The translations under genes were made by a program, and so were the position numbers. From sequence record MG655267.1: a stretch of 64,000 nt of DNA; one strand, given 5' to 3'. Positions 1-21,676 of the stretch are shown here, in pieces. The notes under the pieces are model-generated. The model made no database searches. It worked only from the letters and a program-made list of their open reading frames with translations, and was not told the origin of the DNA. Each line of letters opens with the position of its first letter. The first letter of the stretch is position 1.

Positions 1-759
1 TCAATCCACGCGCTGTTCAAGTTCGACCTTTACACCCATGTCAAAAATAAACTGGTACTCTCGGCCACCCTTGAGGCGGATGACCAGTTTATTAACGACA
101 TGTACTTTGTCATCTACCCGAATAAAATCAGGTTCCGTGGCGGCGAGTATGATAAGTACATCGAAGCGATTGCCTTGATGTATGGACTGGTGAGTAATAA
201 GAAGGTCAAGACCAAAGGCTTCGGCGGGACGTATAACCACGTCAAGTTTGAGCAAAGCATCATGAAAGACAAGCAGCTGTTGAAGACGTACCTTACGCTC
301 ATCAACAAAGTGTTCTCCTTCTTCTTTATTAAAGTGAAGGAACCCGAACAACGCTGCCTCATTTATTGTGCCACGGTCGAGATGTGTTTGTACGTGACGG
401 ATTATCTGAGCAGTATTCATGATACCCTGATCGTGCGTAAGTATACCCAGGAAGACCCGAAAGAATCGTTGTATGAATCTGACGTGAGTGTTTCGACACT
501 GAAGTCAGCCGGTACCGGTGTGGATATCCCAGGACTCCGCACTTGCATCATGACGATCGCGATTGGGTCACGGCAAGCCAGTGATCAGGCATTGGGACGA
601 CTGCGGCGGTTGAAAGACTACCCGGACACCATCCCGACGTTTGTTTACTTCGCCTGCACGGGTATCGAAGCACACATGAAATACCACAGCAAGAAACTCG
701 AACTCTTCCCAGTGAAGACGTTGAGTCTGCGTGAGGTGAACAGCGGCTTCTCGTTATAA
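1..759 (+). CDS. SF2 (UvsW-like) helicase, C-terminal part; gene starts before the window (phiKZ gp75-like position)
   Basis: Frame 1 is open from base 1. It contains LSAT (motif III), KSAGTGVDIPGL (motif V) and QALGRLRR (motif VI). Confidence 0.88.
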   Translation, partial: SIHALFKFDLYTHVKNKLVLSATLEADDQFINDMYFVIYPNKIRFRGGEYDKYIEAIALMYGLVSNKKVKTKGFGGTYNHVKFEQSIMKDKQLLKTYLTLINKVFSFFFIKVKEPEQRCLIYCATVEMCLYVTDYLSSIHDTLIVRKYTQEDPKESLYESDVSVSTLKSAGTGVDIPGLRTCIMTIAIGSRQASDQALGRLRRLKDYPDTIPTFVYFACTGIEAHMKYHSKKLELFPVKTLSLREVNSGFSL

Positions 760-8473: not shown

Positions 8474-8525
8474 CGGCATATAGGCCCTCCGTAATGGAGG
8501 GCCTTTTATGACATCTTTTTTTTTT
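8474..8525. terminator. Bidirectional terminator between convergent genes
   Basis: CGGCATA + AGGCCCTCC-GTAAT-GGAGGGCCT + TTTATG...T10. Confidence 0.8.
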
Positions 8526-8536
8526 GGTTTACAGCG

Positions 8537-8914
8537 TTATACCAGGCGCTGAGTTAACTGCGAACTATATTGAATAGCGTGATAGGTCGCAGGTTTCTCA
8601 AGCTGCTCGGTGCAGCGGTAGACTGGGGTCTTCATAAAAGGACAACCGGCATTCATTAATGCCTCACGGTTGCTGGGTGACTCATCAACGCGAATCACCA
8701 CATCCGTGGACTGGAAGCCAAAGACTTCCCGCTTCGTTGCAGTATATTCTGCATCCAGCACCACGATCTTACGGTTGATCACCAGCTTCACGGCCACCGG
8801 GTATTTGATTACCAGGTCTGACCCTAAGCCCGCCAAGACAAACTTAATGACAAACTTCTTAAGTCCATTTAGCAACTGACTCTCACTGGCCCAACTTTTA
8901 ACAATCTGCAGCAT
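8537..8914 (-). CDS. Hypothetical protein
   Basis: Start reassigned to ATG 8914 (GAGTGGA upstream); 125 aa. Confidence 0.55.
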   Translation of the reverse strand: MLQIVKSWASESQLLNGLKKFVIKFVLAGLGSDLVIKYPVAVKLVINRKIVVLDAEYTATKREVFGFQSTDVVIRVDESPSNREALMNAGCPFMKTPVYRCTEQLEKPATYHAIQYSSQLTQRLV

Positions 8915-8989
8915 GTGTGTATTTCCACTCATATAAGGGGAAGTTAAGAAAAGCAACCTGAGGGTCCGTCCGTGATCCCTCATAATGTA

Positions 8990-9544
8990 TTACTTCATAC
9001 CGTCCAACTGCTTTTGAAGTTCCTTTAACTGACGGCTTGCATCCGGCGTCTCGGCGTCATGATCTCTGATCGCTTCAATAAACGACTTCCGTTTGCAATA
9101 AGGATACTTCATCCATTTATCAAATGACAAACCAAATTTGCCCAAGATATCCGCACGCAGATATTCGAGCTCATACTTTCGATACCCAACTAACGCCAGC
9201 GAGTCTTCCTGCTCGACCTGTAAGATTAACGAGAGCGGCGAGGTTTCCACGTTATGGTCAATAATCCCAAACGTGTCATCGTAAAGCTCTGTTAATCGAA
9301 TTAGTGGATACTCCCAGTTCTCGGTAAGAAACGTGGGGTTTTCTAACGCGACATCCCAGGCATCGGACCGATCACTTTCGGACAGACCGAAATCCCAATG
9401 GATTAGATGTCGGCTTGATCGAACGTCTGATTCAGTGTATTCGTCATTAGGGTAAAAAAAACCCGTGCTACGTTCAGCGGGGTGTATGCCGGGAAGGTGT
9501 TGCTCACCAGCGGTTGACGCGCCTGGCAGTTCGGGCATTTCCAA
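8990..9544 (-). CDS. T4 gp51-like / tail-assembly-chaperone C-terminal ORF, probably entered by -1 frameshift at 9454-9461
   Basis: Overlaps the upstream ORF by 142 nt in the -1 frame and has only a weak own start. The C-terminal FGLSFDKWMKYPYCKRKSFIEAI resembles gp51/TAC-T type motifs. Confidence 0.6.
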   Translation of the reverse strand: MEMPELPGASTAGEQHLPGIHPAERSTGFFYPNDEYTESDVRSSRHLIHWDFGLSESDRSDAWDVALENPTFLTENWEYPLIRLTELYDDTFGIIDHNVETSPLSLILQVEQEDSLALVGYRKYELEYLRADILGKFGLSFDKWMKYPYCKRKSFIEAIRDHDAETPDASRQLKELQKQLDGMK

Positions 9545-11022
9545 CGCGGCACCGCAACCACACCGACCGTTACCCGGTTGATGAACTTGTTCAGCTCTTC
9601 AAAGAACGGTTTACGCATATCCGGGGTTGCACTGAATTGCTTCAGCAGTAATGCCACGTCATCGGCCGACTCAACATAGTTGCCATCGTTGAACTCGATC
9701 TTGGTCACCCAGTGGGCGTAACCGCGCATGGAGGACAGCGCTGCCTGTTTGTTGATGTGCTGCTCACGCTGCTCACGCGTCATGCTGTCGTTGAAGCTGT
9801 CGGTGATCGCTTGTTGAATACCGTTGATCCAGGCATAACCCGCTGCATTCTTATCTTCGAGTGATGGCACCCGCAGATAGAACTTCACATCTTTCACAGT
9901 GATGACATTGTCTTTCATCACTTCAAAGCCGGTCTGATAGGCAATGACCTGCTCGACGGTACGGCCGCTGAAGTGAGACATGTGCGCACGCTGGGTTGGT
10001 GACAGACGATTGTTGTCAATGATCGACAGACGAGAGACGTTAACTTTCGCTGCTTCAACATGCACACACTTCTTCGGATCGGCGGCACAGGCAGTGACCA
10101 TGTGGTAGCCAGACTTAAAGCGTGCGCCCAGGTAGGCGTTAGCGATCAGATCGAGATCCTGCTCTTTGATTAACGGCAGCAGGGTTTTCTTATCGGAGAC
10201 GCCGATGCTGCTGTCAGTGACCATACCCAGCAGGAAGTCAGTCATGTGCTTACGCACCACGACATCCAGGTTGTTAAACACCAGACCGTTGGTACGACGA
10301 CCGAGGATCGCTTTCTCAGCCATGATGGCGGTTTGCATATCCACAAACTCATCATCACCGGCAATCAGCAACGTAACCCAGATACCAGAATGTGGCAGCG
10401 GCAGATGGACATAGTCGCCCATGTTCATCACGCCACGAGCACGCATCACTGCCTGTGGACCGGTCAGCAGTTTAGTGCCTTCGGTACTGCGCTTCACTGG
10501 CGGGCGAGAAACACCCTGCACTTTGTTATTGTCGAGCAGAATACCCTGCAGCCACTGCGCACCATCTTGACGAATGGTCAGGTTCAGACCAGAACGGTAC
10601 GACAGGTTGGTGATGGCGTTACTGGCCAGGGATAGCCAGATCATCGCTTTATCAGCACCGTACAGACTGACGATCTCTTTTAAGATCTTCTTGTCTTCGG
10701 TGTTGGTGTCGATCTCATTGATCAGCGCCGTCGCTGCATCGTAATCCTGATGCATAATAGACAGCACACCTTCCGTGCCGACATCCTCCATGGAATTCAG
10801 CTTTTCAATGATCGGGTTCTGATAGAGCGGATCGAACGCCTGCTCAACGGCTTCAGCTTCAGGTGCTTCAGCTTCGCCCTGTTGGCCGGTTTCTGCTGGC
10901 TCGGGATCGGTGCCAATAGTACCAGTAGTCGCCGGACGGCCTGGATCAACTTCAGGAATACCAGAGTGGTTTTCTTCAACAGGCTCTTGCTGTGACAGAA
11001 TGGATGGGTTATCACCGGACAT
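9403..11022 (-). CDS. T4 gp26-like baseplate-hub/tail-assembly chaperone (phiKZ gp77-like position)
   Basis: 539 aa with an acidic N-terminal extension, CAADPKKC and C-terminal CPNC motifs, ending RVFFTL...; architecture resembles gp26-type chaperones. Confidence 0.6.
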   Translation of the reverse strand: MSGDNPSILSQQEPVEENHSGIPEVDPGRPATTGTIGTDPEPAETGQQGEAEAPEAEAVEQAFDPLYQNPIIEKLNSMEDVGTEGVLSIMHQDYDAATALINEIDTNTEDKKILKEIVSLYGADKAMIWLSLASNAITNLSYRSGLNLTIRQDGAQWLQGILLDNNKVQGVSRPPVKRSTEGTKLLTGPQAVMRARGVMNMGDYVHLPLPHSGIWVTLLIAGDDEFVDMQTAIMAEKAILGRRTNGLVFNNLDVVVRKHMTDFLLGMVTDSSIGVSDKKTLLPLIKEQDLDLIANAYLGARFKSGYHMVTACAADPKKCVHVEAAKVNVSRLSIIDNNRLSPTQRAHMSHFSGRTVEQVIAYQTGFEVMKDNVITVKDVKFYLRVPSLEDKNAAGYAWINGIQQAITDSFNDSMTREQREQHINKQAALSSMRGYAHWVTKIEFNDGNYVESADDVALLLKQFSATPDMRKPFFEELNKFINRVTVGVVAVPRWKCPNCQARQPLVSNTFPAYTPLNVARVFFTLMTNTLNQTFDQADI

Positions 11023-11039
11023 TATGCTTATCCTTACCT

Positions 11040-11507
11040 TTACTTTTTAGTGGGGTCGACCTGAACCGGGTCATTGAGTTTGCTTGCTGCGCCAGCGGCA
11101 ACCGCGTTAGCATGGGCGCTGTCTGACATGGTCAGAATGGCAGCACCGTGACGTTGCATCGCATCCAGCAATTTACTCTGCAGGACGATGTATTGTTCGT
11201 GCACACTGAGGAAGTCAGCGATGGTGCTGTCATGCAAGGCATAACCGGTTTTGCCTTGATGCTGCTGCTTGATCATCGGCAGTGTTTCATCGATCTCTTT
11301 GACTACAGCCAGCGCCGCTTCGATGTGCGAGCTTAACGCAGAGGGGTTTGGCTGAAAGCGAATGATGTTGGTGTTGACGGCCATGAGGCAAGTGTTGCTC
11401 AGCTCATTGCGCAAATTAATCGTATAAGTTGCCGCAGAATCCAGGTACTCCCAGAACTGATCGGGCTGATGGACCTCTGGTGCGAGAGGCGGTTCATTGG
11501 TTGACAT
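11040..11507 (-). CDS. Hypothetical protein (core-block position)
   Basis: 155 aa helical ORF upstream of, and co-oriented with, the chaperone gene. Confidence 0.7.
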   Translation of the reverse strand: MSTNEPPLAPEVHQPDQFWEYLDSAATYTINLRNELSNTCLMAVNTNIIRFQPNPSALSSHIEAALAVVKEIDETLPMIKQQHQGKTGYALHDSTIADFLSVHEQYIVLQSKLLDAMQRHGAAILTMSDSAHANAVAAGAASKLNDPVQVDPTKK

Positions 11508-11599
11508 AACGGGTCCTTGAGGTGATTTATCTTGTGGCTTACATATATTGACACTACTAATGTCAACAATTACAACGTTTATACGGAAAAGGCACGGTC

Positions 11600-12511
11600 A
11601 TGAGTGATTTTACTGACTTAACGAAATTGAAGACCGAATTACCACAAAACATCCAAAAGATTGATGAGCAGGATGATGTGGGTGACTTCAGCGATCTTAA
11701 CGACTACCTCATGACCATCATTCCGGATGAACGGCGTGAGCGCTTGATCGCGATCTGTCAAAACCTGAGCACCCTGCAATATCATCAAGTCCAGCCCGAT
11801 GTGGATCGGTTACTGATGATGGCCAACGACGGTGAAGCGCCGTCGGTACTCGATGACTTGACCCGGTTGTTATTTGAACACGCTTATGACTTAACGAAAA
11901 ACATGGGCTTTAACTGGGCTGATGAGATTGAGTTTGATCAGCTGTTCCTGCTCGGTGATGTAATCGAAGGTGCCATGTTGATTGATGGCATGGAAGACTA
12001 CGGCGACCTCTCAGCGATCCTGGATGGGGATGACTCAGTTGAAGAGAAGGTGGTGGATATCTGGGGCCTGGTGCTCGACAAAGACATGCACCATCTCTTT
12101 GAACAGATCCAGTCCATCGAACCGGCGGTGATCAGCGGGATCAAGCAAGTCACGACCCGACCGTATGCCGAAGACGATTATGCAGATGTGCAGCGCCCAC
12201 TTGAGTTCGTGGTTGAGCGGTTGGTGAAAGTCCGTGAAATGATGAAGACCGATGGCATTGCTTACCAGCATGTGGCCAAGGGCGGGGCATTAGGCGTTGA
12301 GCTCGATTCACTGATCACGCTCTACACCCCTGAGTTGAATGCCGTGACCGATCCGATCGAACTGACCGACCTGCTGGTTGCCTTTACCCTGATCAGCAAC
12401 ACCCCGGATGGGTTGGTGAAATCCACCGCATCCCGGTTGGCAGAAAAATGGATTGATGATATCGAAGTCATCAATGTGGTAGGTAAACATATCGACAGGT
12501 ATCCCGTGTGA
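11600..12511 (+). CDS. Acidic protein, probable virion component (phiKZ gp79-like position)
   Basis: AAGG SD; 303 aa; Asp/Glu-rich; GTGA overlap with the RNAP subunit gene. Confidence 0.7.
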   Translation: MSDFTDLTKLKTELPQNIQKIDEQDDVGDFSDLNDYLMTIIPDERRERLIAICQNLSTLQYHQVQPDVDRLLMMANDGEAPSVLDDLTRLLFEHAYDLTKNMGFNWADEIEFDQLFLLGDVIEGAMLIDGMEDYGDLSAILDGDDSVEEKVVDIWGLVLDKDMHHLFEQIQSIEPAVISGIKQVTTRPYAEDDYADVQRPLEFVVERLVKVREMMKTDGIAYQHVAKGGALGVELDSLITLYTPELNAVTDPIELTDLLVAFTLISNTPDGLVKSTASRLAEKWIDDIEVINVVGKHIDRYPV

Positions 12512-13873: not shown

Positions 13874-14590
13874 ATGTATGGTCTATTGATCTTAGCACTA
13901 CCCCGGTCACCGTACGTCCACATGAGTGCGATGACTGCGGACAGGTTTACTGAACTGCTCCCACAACTCCAGAAAGAGCTCGATGCAGATATCTTTCCTA
14001 ATGTGTGTTTCCAGGGTGCATTCAATGTCAGTAATACCCGTACGGTCACTCAGCTGTTTATTCCGTGTAGCGGATTGGTGGCGGCACGGGAGTTGGGGTA
14101 TGAACAGATCCGCAATATTCTCGCCAACCCAGAGAAGGAAGTCCAGCATGTCACCAACATCGGTGATTGGCTGGGTATTCCTGGTAAGGTGATGTTTGAT
14201 AATGCGGATGGATCTGTGGATGAGGTCGTTGTGACTGACATGTACAAATATCTGGTACATGAAAGAAGAGAGCGCTCTGTCTTTCGGTTCAGTCCTATTG
14301 ATCTTAGTATAACCGATACCGAACCATTACCAACTCACCTCTACCCACGTGATCATTTCTACGACCAGGTCTACCTCGACAAAGACGGCGAGCGTGCTTT
14401 CCTGTCTTACGGGTCGTGCGGTGAGGAAGGCTGTGTCATAGAACCCAGAGAAGAGAAACCCGTGCAAGTGTACGGCGTTACCTACTCGTCACTGGATGAA
14501 GTGGCCCGATGCTATAACCTGCCTGAGCAGTACGTGAAAGAACGCGTTGAGTCTGACAGCCTTGAATGGCTGGAGTGGTCATATTTGTAA
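13874..14590 (+). CDS. Hypothetical protein with C-terminal NUMOD1/IENR1-like HTH; paralogue of 18136..18918
   Basis: AAGGAG SD; VTNIGDWL and VTDMYKYL motifs shared with 18136..18918; C-terminal GVTYSSLDEVARCY. Confidence 0.75.
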   Translation: MYGLLILALPRSPYVHMSAMTADRFTELLPQLQKELDADIFPNVCFQGAFNVSNTRTVTQLFIPCSGLVAARELGYEQIRNILANPEKEVQHVTNIGDWLGIPGKVMFDNADGSVDEVVVTDMYKYLVHERRERSVFRFSPIDLSITDTEPLPTHLYPRDHFYDQVYLDKDGERAFLSYGSCGEEGCVIEPREEKPVQVYGVTYSSLDEVARCYNLPEQYVKERVESDSLEWLEWSYL

Positions 14591-18135: not shown

Positions 18136-18918
18136 ATGGCTATGACGTTCGAAAAAGAAGGGGACACGTTGCACATTGTGCGACTGAGAACCAAAGGCTG
18201 GTACCACATGACGGTAACCAGCGATCCTGATGCGAGTATGGATATCGTTAACACGAACTTACGTCAGGGCACTTTTACTGATCCACTTTTACAACACCAG
18301 TACGACATCTGTAAAAAAGAGATGGGGCAAGATCCCAATCCAAATGACATCGTTTTCCACCAGTTCGTGACCACGCCAGACCAGACCGGATATCAGTCTG
18401 GCCACTGGATGATTCGTGATCACATTCGCCACGGCTATTCACTGAAGTGCCTGACTAACATCGGTGACTGGCTTTCGACCGCAGCCTATCTTTATATCCC
18501 AGACCCTGATGATAAAGAGAGTGGTGAGAGAAAATACAAAGTAACTGACTTAGGCAAGTATCTCGACAAGGAAGAGTTGTTGGGTCACTCCGACCACCTG
18601 CCGATGTATTTCTTGCCTGATGAGGAACCGGGTGACAGCTATGATGAGTTGATTGAAACCCATCGTCTTCCGCAACCTGACAAAGGTTACTCTTGTGTGG
18701 CCATCAAGAACGGTATGTCGTTTAGTTTGCTGACGTACAACAACTCCAAGCGGGTGCTTTCAGAAGAGGAAGAACTGCAAACCACAACCGTCCCAGTCAG
18801 GGCAGATGGTTTGCTGTACAGCTCCGTCTTAGAGTTGGCTATGGCTAAGAACGCCCCAGTCTGGTTTGTCTTGGAGATGTTAACTTCCGAAACCGACCCG
18901 AACTGGCATTTCGTCTAA
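18136..18918 (+). CDS. Hypothetical protein with C-terminal NUMOD1-like HTH; paralogue of 13874..14590
   Basis: AAGGA SD; LTNIGDWL, KVTDLGKYL and GLLYSSVLELAMA. Confidence 0.75.
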   Translation: MAMTFEKEGDTLHIVRLRTKGWYHMTVTSDPDASMDIVNTNLRQGTFTDPLLQHQYDICKKEMGQDPNPNDIVFHQFVTTPDQTGYQSGHWMIRDHIRHGYSLKCLTNIGDWLSTAAYLYIPDPDDKESGERKYKVTDLGKYLDKEELLGHSDHLPMYFLPDEEPGDSYDELIETHRLPQPDKGYSCVAIKNGMSFSLLTYNNSKRVLSEEEELQTTTVPVRADGLLYSSVLELAMAKNAPVWFVLEMLTSETDPNWHFV

Positions 18919-20600: not shown

Positions 20601-20652
20601 CAGCATAAGGAGAGGCCTCGCGCCTCTCCTGTTTATGCCGTCTTTTTTTTTT
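20601..20652. terminator. Bidirectional terminator
   Basis: CAGCATAA + AGGAGAGGC-CTCGC-GCCTCTCCT + GTTTATGCCG + T10, between convergent genes. Confidence 0.82.
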
Positions 20653-21154
20653 ACACTAAAATGCCGTTAAAGGCCACCGGGTCATTAGCCAGGAATGGAT
20701 TGTACCGAACCACGGACCCTAATGTGTAATCGTAATAGATGAAATCCAAGCATTGCGCACCCTGGTAGGTAGTCCATGACTTTGATAGATAACCATTGCG
20801 ATCTAACGCAACGTAAGCTGGGCGGCTTGACAACGGAGTAAACTTCATCAACACTTGTGGCTGGTTGTTGAGGTTGTTTGTAAATACAGGCAGGGAAGGA
20901 TGCGCATGCCTTGCAATGGAGCACAACCAAGAGTCGTAGGTAAACCACTCTTTATACGGCGTGCCGTACATGTTGTTGGATGTGTTCAATGTAGTATTAA
21001 CATATTTACCGGCATTGGCGGACATGCTGGTAGTCGCGTTCGCTACCTTCGTATATTTGGCGGCATTGGCCGCAAGCCACGCCTCGAATTGCGCATAGGT
21101 CATCTTAGTACCTATCTGTGGCTGTGACTTACTGCCCATTAACATCTCTAACAT
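20651..21154 (-). CDS. Putative virion/tail-associated protein, MLE(L/M)LM family
   Basis: CAGGAG SD; clear paralogue of 21167..21676 (GTPY, IARHA, RNGY, DFIYYD shared). Confidence 0.72.
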   Translation of the reverse strand: MLEMLMGSKSQPQIGTKMTYAQFEAWLAANAAKYTKVANATTSMSANAGKYVNTTLNTSNNMYGTPYKEWFTYDSWLCSIARHAHPSLPVFTNNLNNQPQVLMKFTPLSSRPAYVALDRNGYLSKSWTTYQGAQCLDFIYYDYTLGSVVRYNPFLANDPVAFNGILV

Positions 21155-21166
21155 GGTAACTCCTGA

Positions 21167-21676
21167 TTAGATCAACACCCCGTTAAACGGTACCGGTGTG
21201 CCGCCATTTAACGGAGTCCACCGCATCACAACACCCTGGGTATTGTCGTAGTAAATAAAGTCAAGCACAGTACGACCGTTAAATGATCCGTAAGACAAGC
21301 TGGTGTAACCGTTACGATTGAGGCCTGAATAGGCACTTTTGGTAACATAAGGTCCAAGCTTCATTAAACAAAACTGTTTATTCGCCAACATGTAATCAAA
21401 CATCGTTTGTGCCGGACACGCATGTCGTGCGATCCTTGCCCAAGTTGAATCGTGAGTACAGGAGTTTAAATAGGGAGTACCCCACATGTTACCGCCATCA
21501 GCCGTCATGGAGATCCTGGCATAGCCGTTCGTAAACGTGGTGGACGAAGGGGTGCCTGTATTCGACGCTGCACTGACCGCACTGTACTTAGTGGTATTGG
21601 TATTTAACCAAGTAACAAAATCCGCATAGCTCATCTTTACAGTTTTCTTGCCAGCGTACATTAATAACTCGAGCAT
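21167..21676 (-). CDS. Putative virion/tail-associated protein, MLE(L/M)LM family
   Basis: GAGGTGGAG SD; tandem paralogue of 20651..21154. Confidence 0.72.
   Translation of the reverse strand: MLELLMYAGKKTVKMSYADFVTWLNTNTTKYSAVSAASNTGTPSSTTFTNGYARISMTADGGNMWGTPYLNSCTHDSTWARIARHACPAQTMFDYMLANKQFCLMKLGPYVTKSAYSGLNRNGYTSLSYGSFNGRTVLDFIYYDNTQGVVMRWTPLNGGTPVPFNGVLI

Follow-up and report, generated by a model that had tools for sequence, protein, structure and literature searches.

Do two overlapping open reading frames (ORFs) on the minus strand of Erwinia phage vB_EamM_Bosolaphorus represent two genes, or a single gene that is decoded in two frames? The question arises from a stretch of 64,000 nucleotides (nt) of record MG655267.1 (the window hereafter; positions refer to it unless another sequence is named), in which ORF1 (9403-11022, minus strand; 539 codons plus the stop codon) ends inside ORF2 (8990-9544, minus strand), the two sharing positions 9403-9544. 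Region 8500-11600 of the window is 100% identical to Bosolaphorus (MG655267, genus Agricanvirus), where GenBank names the two ORFs gp270 (539 amino acids, aa) and gp269, each as a 'hypothetical protein'. The same region displays 98-99% identity to RAY (99%), Ea35-70, Deimos-Minion and eleven other records, and 80% identity to Erwinia billingiae phage AH06, which belongs to the same genus. An earlier sequence-only reading had proposed that a programmed -1 frameshift joins the two ORFs, which it described as tail-assembly-chaperone-like by comparison with lambda G/GT. The comparative data presented here suggest that programmed ribosomal -1 slippage at a T run located in the overlap probably does join ORF1 to ORF2.

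According to the mechanism that we propose, ORF1 and ORF2 would constitute one recoded gene. Most ribosomes would stop at the ORF1 stop codon and release the 539-aa protein, i.e. the zero-frame (short) product, while a minority, having reached the U run close to the 3' end of ORF1 with two Phe-tRNAs on T_TTT_TTT, would slip back by one base and continue in the -1 frame through ORF2. The long product would keep nearly all of ORF1, except that the end of its C-terminal helix would be replaced by a conserved, mostly helical domain of about 150 residues. Both isoforms would thus be made from one mRNA in a fixed ratio.

The sequence of the locus itself bears out what had been read from it. Read on the minus strand, ORF1 contains, at the site named in the sequence-only reading, a run of eight T's that provides a perfect T_TTT_TTT heptamer in register with the ORF1 frame. 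The run is followed by a short zero-frame tail, as had been stated, and both the list of ORFs and a frame check place ORF2 in the -1 frame relative to ORF1. The length arithmetic put forward for the shifted product is consistent with residues F522 and F523 being the Phe pair encoded by the run. All relatives conserve the part of ORF2 that lies behind the run (156 codons), but not the stretch preceding it, to which the annotated start belongs. The first ATG that follows the run in the -1 frame of Bosolaphorus is found only within the last 40 codons or so, in agreement with the claim that no Met intervenes; one GTG and two TTG codons lie between. Upstream of the run, the sole start codons of the -1 frame are, again as claimed, one TTG and one ATG, both located within ORF1, the buried ATG being the start used by GenBank for gp269.

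To what extent are the run and the frame relation conserved? A general homologous-protein search returned close relatives only (13 for ORF1; 3, then 13, for ORF2). Close and middle relatives were compared in tblastn searches run one frame at a time. The match of ORF1 and that of ORF2 overlap by an identical 54 nt in all 16 Agricanvirus records, which were sequenced by different groups, and the same 54-nt overlap is present in AH06, Salmonella phage SA002, Erwinia phages pEa_SNUABM_37/48 and Proteus phage 10. Protein identities are 40-80% for AH06, SA002, pEa_SNUABM_37 and Proteus phage 10, with 40-50% for the middle-distance relatives. In a DNA alignment, seven T's followed by ACC are invariant in all five lineages, with diverged flanks. 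In four of the five lineages (AH06, SA002, pEa_SNUABM_37 and Proteus phage 10), a stop codon interrupts the -1 frame 4-14 codons before the run; the interval contains neither ATG nor GTG nor TTG, and the first possible start is found 38-87 codons behind the run. Since no start precedes the run in these four lineages, the upstream start of Bosolaphorus is lineage-specific.

The comparison was extended to 80 loci from IMG/VR, collected with the ORF1 alignment, plus annotated phages, giving 87 loci with the end of ORF1 on the contig; phiKZ (NC_004629), Goslar (NC_048170) and Halocynthia phage JM-2012 were examined besides these. Protein identity among the compared loci goes down to 22-25%, and a non-redundant set of 75 relatives was defined by less than 85% mutual identity in ORF2. 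The -1 frame is open across the ORF1 stop codon in 87 out of 87 loci and extends over 123-170 codons (median 148), compared with a median of 6 codons for the +1 frame. Likewise, all 87 loci carry a run of 5 to 9 T's within the overlap. The arrangement is common to phiKZ, PhiPA3, 201phi2-1, Goslar, a Bacillus phage, JM-2012 (the most distant match) and about 80 IMG/VR contigs. The conservation of the T run and frame relation across homologous gene pairs, which the sequence-only reading had named among its checks, is thus found throughout, and its guess that phiKZ-like phages share the -1 recoding receives strong comparative support, with a wider reach than was supposed.

The heptamer itself is canonical and in register in 63 of the 75 relatives (T_TTT_TTT in 40, T_TTT_TTC in 21, T_TTT_TTA in 1 and T_TTT_TTG in 1). 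Runs of at least six T's occupy the site in 70 of the 75, as against two such runs in the 112 kb of remaining ORF1 sequence. Elsewhere in ORF1, TTT accounts for 37% of the Phe codons, TTC being preferred, and T for 28% of the third positions. Because T runs are rare and TTT is the minority codon elsewhere in ORF1, the run must be held by selection at synonymous sites, and it is retained in genomes whose G+C content ranges from 26% to 59%. As judged from these sequences, the heptamer is conserved beyond the amino-acid requirement, in the way expected for a -1 frameshift site. Finally, the -1 frame opens exactly at the run in one locus and within 15 nt of it in 21 of the 75 relatives; therefore, the change of frame must occur at the run.

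The second line of evidence is that ORF2 behaves as a coding region devoid of its own start. Translations of the -1 frame that begin at the run and end at the stop codon match one another (BLASTP) and align over their full length, and 72 of the 75 match phrog_12109; the Bosolaphorus ORF belongs to the phrog_13274 / phrog_12109 family. The first 20 residues are conserved to the same degree as the columns further on, and homology begins with the first residue after the run. By contrast, the first usable start is scattered across aligned residues 5 to 151, mostly removing conserved columns; for 47 of 74 relatives, initiation at the earliest possible codon would come too late to include a Phe column with 96% conservation. 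Of the 87 loci, only about 9 have a -1-frame start codon upstream of the run. An overlapping -1 ORF that is conserved as a protein, yet has no initiation site of its own in most relatives, is what would be expected of a -1 frameshift site.

Current annotations reflect this situation: the small downstream genes begin at whichever internal start codon existed, and conserved sequence is cut off. Only the last 80 of the 167 -1-frame codons of phiKZ are annotated (PHIKZ076.4; 11443-11685 in our locus L090, from NC_004629), and only the last 109 in Goslar (gp082; 32589-32918 in L089). PhiPA3 gp073 (3946-4350 in L006), AH06 gp283 (4527-4733 in L002) and TSMG0035 of JM-2012 (2862-3209 in L091) are likewise truncated pieces of the -1-frame ORF. 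Structure prediction performed poorly on ORF2, giving a helical model of low confidence (predicted local distance difference test, pLDDT, 44.5). As a separate remark on start assignment in this region, the next open frame (8537-8983, minus strand) is 148 aa long versus 125 aa for the gene annotated in GenBank (gp268); its PHROG match begins at residue 24, in agreement with the shorter annotated start.

Third, the two frames have never been found fused. An exhaustive HMMER search for ORF1 homologues yielded 1317 representative clusters, and no fused single ORF is present in the best 150 of them, all of which end within a few residues of the ORF1 C-terminus. The extra length of phrog_8054 and of BFVD members of about 686 aa is N-terminal, not C-terminal. 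Given that the frames are never fused and the -1 ORF is never lost, both products, or their ratio, must be needed. Neither a conserved independent start for ORF2 nor a fused gene, each of which the sequence-only reading had named as an observation that would undermine its proposal, was encountered in the loci and clusters examined.

The nature of the upstream protein is clearer than its annotation suggests. ORF1 corresponds to Chimalliviridae core gene cg18, i.e. phiKZ gp077, Goslar gp081, RAY gp267 and PhiPA3 gp074, an orthology accompanied by conserved synteny next to cg19 and cg20. Notes in the PhiPA3 record equate its homologue with phiKZ gp077, 201phi2-1 gp136 and EL gp47. Homologues are present in 221 phage records and range from about 400 to 650 aa. 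Neither the two ORFs nor their profiles gave a usable match in Pfam, NCBIfam or the PDB sequences. Note that hits of ORF1 to Tako8, a designed repeat protein, were disregarded, no matched stretch passing on its own.

An AlphaFold2 model of ORF1 built from a 118-sequence alignment (pLDDT 87.6; predicted template-modelling score, pTM, 0.87) displays an alpha/beta body ending in a C-terminal helix (residues 518-537). Residues 1-51 (10870-11022, minus strand) are disordered in the model, rich in Pro, Glu and Ala, and variable in length and sequence among relatives; because the Goslar homologue is associated with virions (see below), this N-terminus could serve as a linker or be a propeptide that is processed. 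F522-F523, the pair encoded by the run, belong to the C-terminal helix, whose end would be missing from the long isoform and replaced by ORF2. Residues C312, C319, C496 and C499 are invariant in 73 diverse homologues, as are H211, W215, D289 and W398, and the four invariant Cys suggest a structural metal site.

A fold search of the PDB with the ORF1 model returned no counterpart, only noise (proteasome subunits, TM about 0.08). Foldseek against BFVD matched the model to its own family and to at least eight proteins of about 250 aa named 'baseplate hub assembly protein, T4-like' or 'baseplate hub subunit' with a probability of 1.0 (E 8e-6 to 8e-4, target-normalised TM 0.5-0.6), these matches covering only about half of ORF1. 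PF12322 (T4_baseplate; E 0.0027) and phrog_150 ('baseplate hub'; E 2e-4) each gave a weak match, below the family threshold, in one of the 73 relatives, and the annotators of AH06 and AgentSmith chose 'baseplate' names; the window ORF1 protein itself matched neither family. We take the fold of ORF1 to be new and confidently predicted, and to resemble T4-like baseplate-hub proteins remotely. The allusion of the sequence-only reading to T4 gp26/gp51 therefore stands in part, i.e. as a resemblance at the fold level to T4-like hub assembly proteins, the sequence hits being sub-threshold. Given this likeness, a role of ORF1 in tail or baseplate assembly is possible.

The gene neighbourhood and virion data provide further information. 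The pair is flanked by genes for the beta subunit of the virion RNA polymerase (vRNAP), proteins of unknown function, a helicase piece and a DNA polymerase, a synteny that is shared by phiKZ, PhiPA3 and Goslar. There is no tail tube or tape measure gene within 10 kb of the pair. Evidence for presence in the virion comes from one relative, Goslar, through the literature: gp081 was detected in CsCl-purified virions by 24 peptides (49% coverage, about 22 copies; bioRxiv 10.64898/2026.04.21.720040, Table S4), and gp082 by one peptide (about 3 copies, i.e. about 1/7 of gp081; bioRxiv 10.64898/2026.04.21.720040). If this single-peptide estimate is taken at face value, the ratio of long to short product would be roughly 1 in 7. 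The neighbouring vRNAP subunit gp078 and the protein gp079 are present in about 21 and 15 copies, respectively, like gp081 (bioRxiv 10.64898/2026.04.21.720040), which is absent from the 28 modelled structural proteins. The ORF1 and ORF2 homologues are not listed in the mass spectrometry of RAY and Deimos-Minion lysates (PMC6690015), and the phiKZ annotation gives gp077 without a 'structural' note. Synteny and a copy number like that of the vRNAP subunits point equally to a packaged protein. Altogether, the function would be virion-associated, possibly related to baseplate-hub assembly.

Several observations weigh against programmed ribosomal slippage. The evidence for a trans-frame protein is indirect, consisting of the single peptide of Goslar gp082. 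No stimulatory element was detected: the 122 nt of the window from the run onward show no significant fold (z = -1.0), the downstream 60 nt of the 75 relatives fold no better than control windows (Mann-Whitney p = 0.83), and Shine-Dalgarno (SD)-like tetramers upstream of the run are at background in the same relatives (0.08 vs 0.08), in keeping with the remark in the sequence-only reading that no obvious hairpin or upstream SD is visible. An alignment fold of five related phages revealed no stimulator or pseudoknot, only a small hairpin across the ORF1 stop codon (9383-9416, minus strand). In addition, 12 of the 75 relatives, including PhiPA3, display only T5 or T6 without a canonical in-register X_XXY_YYZ, and the P-site tRNA would re-pair imperfectly there. 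Bosolaphorus itself has an ATG and a TTG in the -1 frame upstream of the run. Lastly, the conserved zero-frame Phe-Phe pair also fixes the register of the run, so that register alone cannot separate ribosomal from transcriptional slippage.

The predicted hairpin at the ORF1 stop codon comprises 10 pairs, two of which show changes on both sides, and its arms flank the stop codon. It is too distant from the run to be a classical stimulator. Both arms also encode conserved residues, and the pairing may thus be incidental.

Which process, then, accounts for the conserved frame relation? The same long protein would be obtained if the phage or host RNA polymerase stuttered on the T run and added one U to some of the mRNAs, since normal translation of such transcripts runs ORF1 into ORF2; recoding would then take place at the RNA level. 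Such transcriptional slippage finds some support in the purity of the homopolymer (T7-T9 in 55 of the 75 relatives), in the codon ahead of the Phe pair, which ends in T far above background and thereby lengthens the run, and in the failure to find a ribosomal stimulator in the window, the five-phage alignment or the 75 relatives. Moreover, late genes of phiKZ-like phages are transcribed by an unusual phage-encoded multisubunit RNA polymerase. However, 20 of the 75 relatives have only T5 or T6, which is short for efficient polymerase stuttering, and the T_TTT_TTC present in 21 relatives shortens the run while keeping a perfect tandem Phe slip site. These many sites argue for the ribosome, so that we consider transcriptional slippage unlikely and the shift as being probably ribosomal in nature. 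ORF2 could also be an independent gene, gp269 as annotated, with its own start, i.e. the ATG or TTG in Bosolaphorus and internal starts elsewhere. GenBank uses this ATG, PHROGs keeps the ORF2 pieces as separate families, and Goslar gp082 was identified as its own database entry. Yet the Bosolaphorus start is missing in AH06, from the same genus, the scattered first starts cut conserved columns in most loci, no SD enrichment is seen in the 75 relatives, and the run and -1 relation are universal among the loci examined, all of which renders this explanation highly improbable. Another possibility is artefact or decay, in which a single gene was split either by a sequencing miscount of the homopolymer or by a genuine frameshift mutation: homopolymer runs are classic sites of indel errors and the original observation came from one genome. 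Against this, the same -1 relation is found in more than 100 independently sequenced genomes and metagenome contigs, no in-frame fused homologue exists in the best 150 of the 1317 clusters, and both the zero-frame tail and the -1 frame are conserved, leaving either of these extremely improbable. In short, the conserved frame relation, the start-less ORF2 and the lack of fusion make sequencing error and independent initiation very unlikely.

A different issue is whether the pair, granting ribosomal slippage, is a true lambda G/GT-type tail assembly chaperone. The logic would be the same, with a -1 shift predicted from sequence near the 3' end of the first ORF and a minor, C-terminally extended product, and the fold of ORF1 resembles T4-like baseplate-hub assembly proteins, with weak echoes of PF12322 and phrog_150. 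Nonetheless, neither ORF nor any relative matched a tail-assembly-chaperone family in Pfam, NCBIfam, PHROGs or the PDB, ORF1 is 539 aa long as compared to about 100-150 aa, the genes next to the pair encode a vRNAP subunit, a helicase piece and a DNA polymerase instead of tube and tape measure proteins, and purified Goslar virions contain the homologue at about 22 copies. We therefore abandoned the 'tail-assembly-chaperone-like, lambda G/GT-like' label, and we hold membership in the G/GT family to be very unlikely.

Full-text literature searches retrieved no description of a frameshift in this gene, and no joined coding sequence is annotated in the GenBank records examined; mentions of 'gp77' in the literature concern other proteins (the Goslar capsid decorator, the PCH45 terminase and a PhiPA3 vRNAP subunit). 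The supplement of Prichard et al. 2023 lists cg18 as a 'hypothetical protein' (PMC10299810), and the core list of the same study does not count the downstream ORF (RAY gp266 / Goslar gp082) as core and gives no frameshift (PMC10299810). The mechanism belongs to a familiar class; what appears to be new is the gene family concerned and how deeply the arrangement is conserved. More speculatively, all nucleus-forming jumbo phages and their kin may share an ancient, family-wide frameshift in a hub-assembly-like protein, a counterpart of G/GT in an unrelated, larger protein, in which case the 150-residue phrog_12109 domain of the long isoform would be an unrecognised core component, packaged at a fixed low ratio and missed or truncated in all current annotations, including that of phiKZ. 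We put this extended proposal forward tentatively, as a possibility rather than as the outcome to be expected.

The Chimalliviridae are intensively studied, yet their core gene cg18 is without an assigned function and its partner is annotated as unrelated small fragments. If the frameshift is genuine, a universal second isoform with a conserved extra domain would be added to the core proteome, hundreds of annotations would need correction, and the long form would belong in proteomic searches and in cryo-EM searches of unassigned virion density. The site would also represent a natural, very deeply conserved case of -1 slippage that takes place on a bare U run with no stimulator that can be recognised, across hosts ranging from Pseudomonas to Bacillus, and would be useful for learning what sets frameshift efficiency. 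Finally, the 'short plus extended isoform' solution of tail chaperones would have arisen in a different gene family.

Other features of the window were noted in passing. Two paralogous pairs are present: 13874-14590 and 18136-18918, both on the plus strand and both matching phrog_6749, and the tandem genes 20651-21154 and 21167-21676, on the minus strand, matching phrog_6409. A 219-aa ORF (100-759, plus strand) matches only positions 448-609 of the 986-position DNA helicase family phrog_16 and may be a split or partial helicase gene.

How does the proposed recoding compare with known systems? T4-like hub proteins, to which ORF1 bears a fold-level likeness, differ from it in several respects: ORF1 is twice as long, has an extra N-terminal domain and a putative four-Cys site, and lies outside any baseplate gene cluster. 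Besides, we know of no frameshift in the T4 hub genes. Escherichia coli dnaX (tau/gamma) offers a parallel for the slip itself: its heptamer is of the homopolymer type, identical tRNAs slip in tandem, and one mRNA yields two isoforms in a set ratio. However, the shifted product of dnaX is the shorter one and requires an upstream SD and a downstream hairpin, whereas here it would be the longer one and neither element is detectable. In some bacteria, dnaX reaches the same outcome through transcriptional slippage. The third system is the conserved -1 frameshift of the tail assembly chaperones of long-tailed phages, exemplified by lambda G/GT and P2 E/E+E'. Compared to lambda G/GT, the present pair shows no sequence or profile relation, its short product is about four times larger, the gene resides in a vRNAP/replication block instead of lying between the genes for tube and tape measure, virions contain the Goslar homologue whereas they lack the chaperones, and the heptamer is all-U and read by Phe-tRNA. 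What the two share is the layout of the recoding: an upstream ORF that carries a slippery heptamer close to its 3' end, a downstream ORF without its own start, both frames conserved in the overlap, a strong RNA stimulator that is often missing and, as proposed here from sequence, a minor C-terminally extended isoform beside a major short one.

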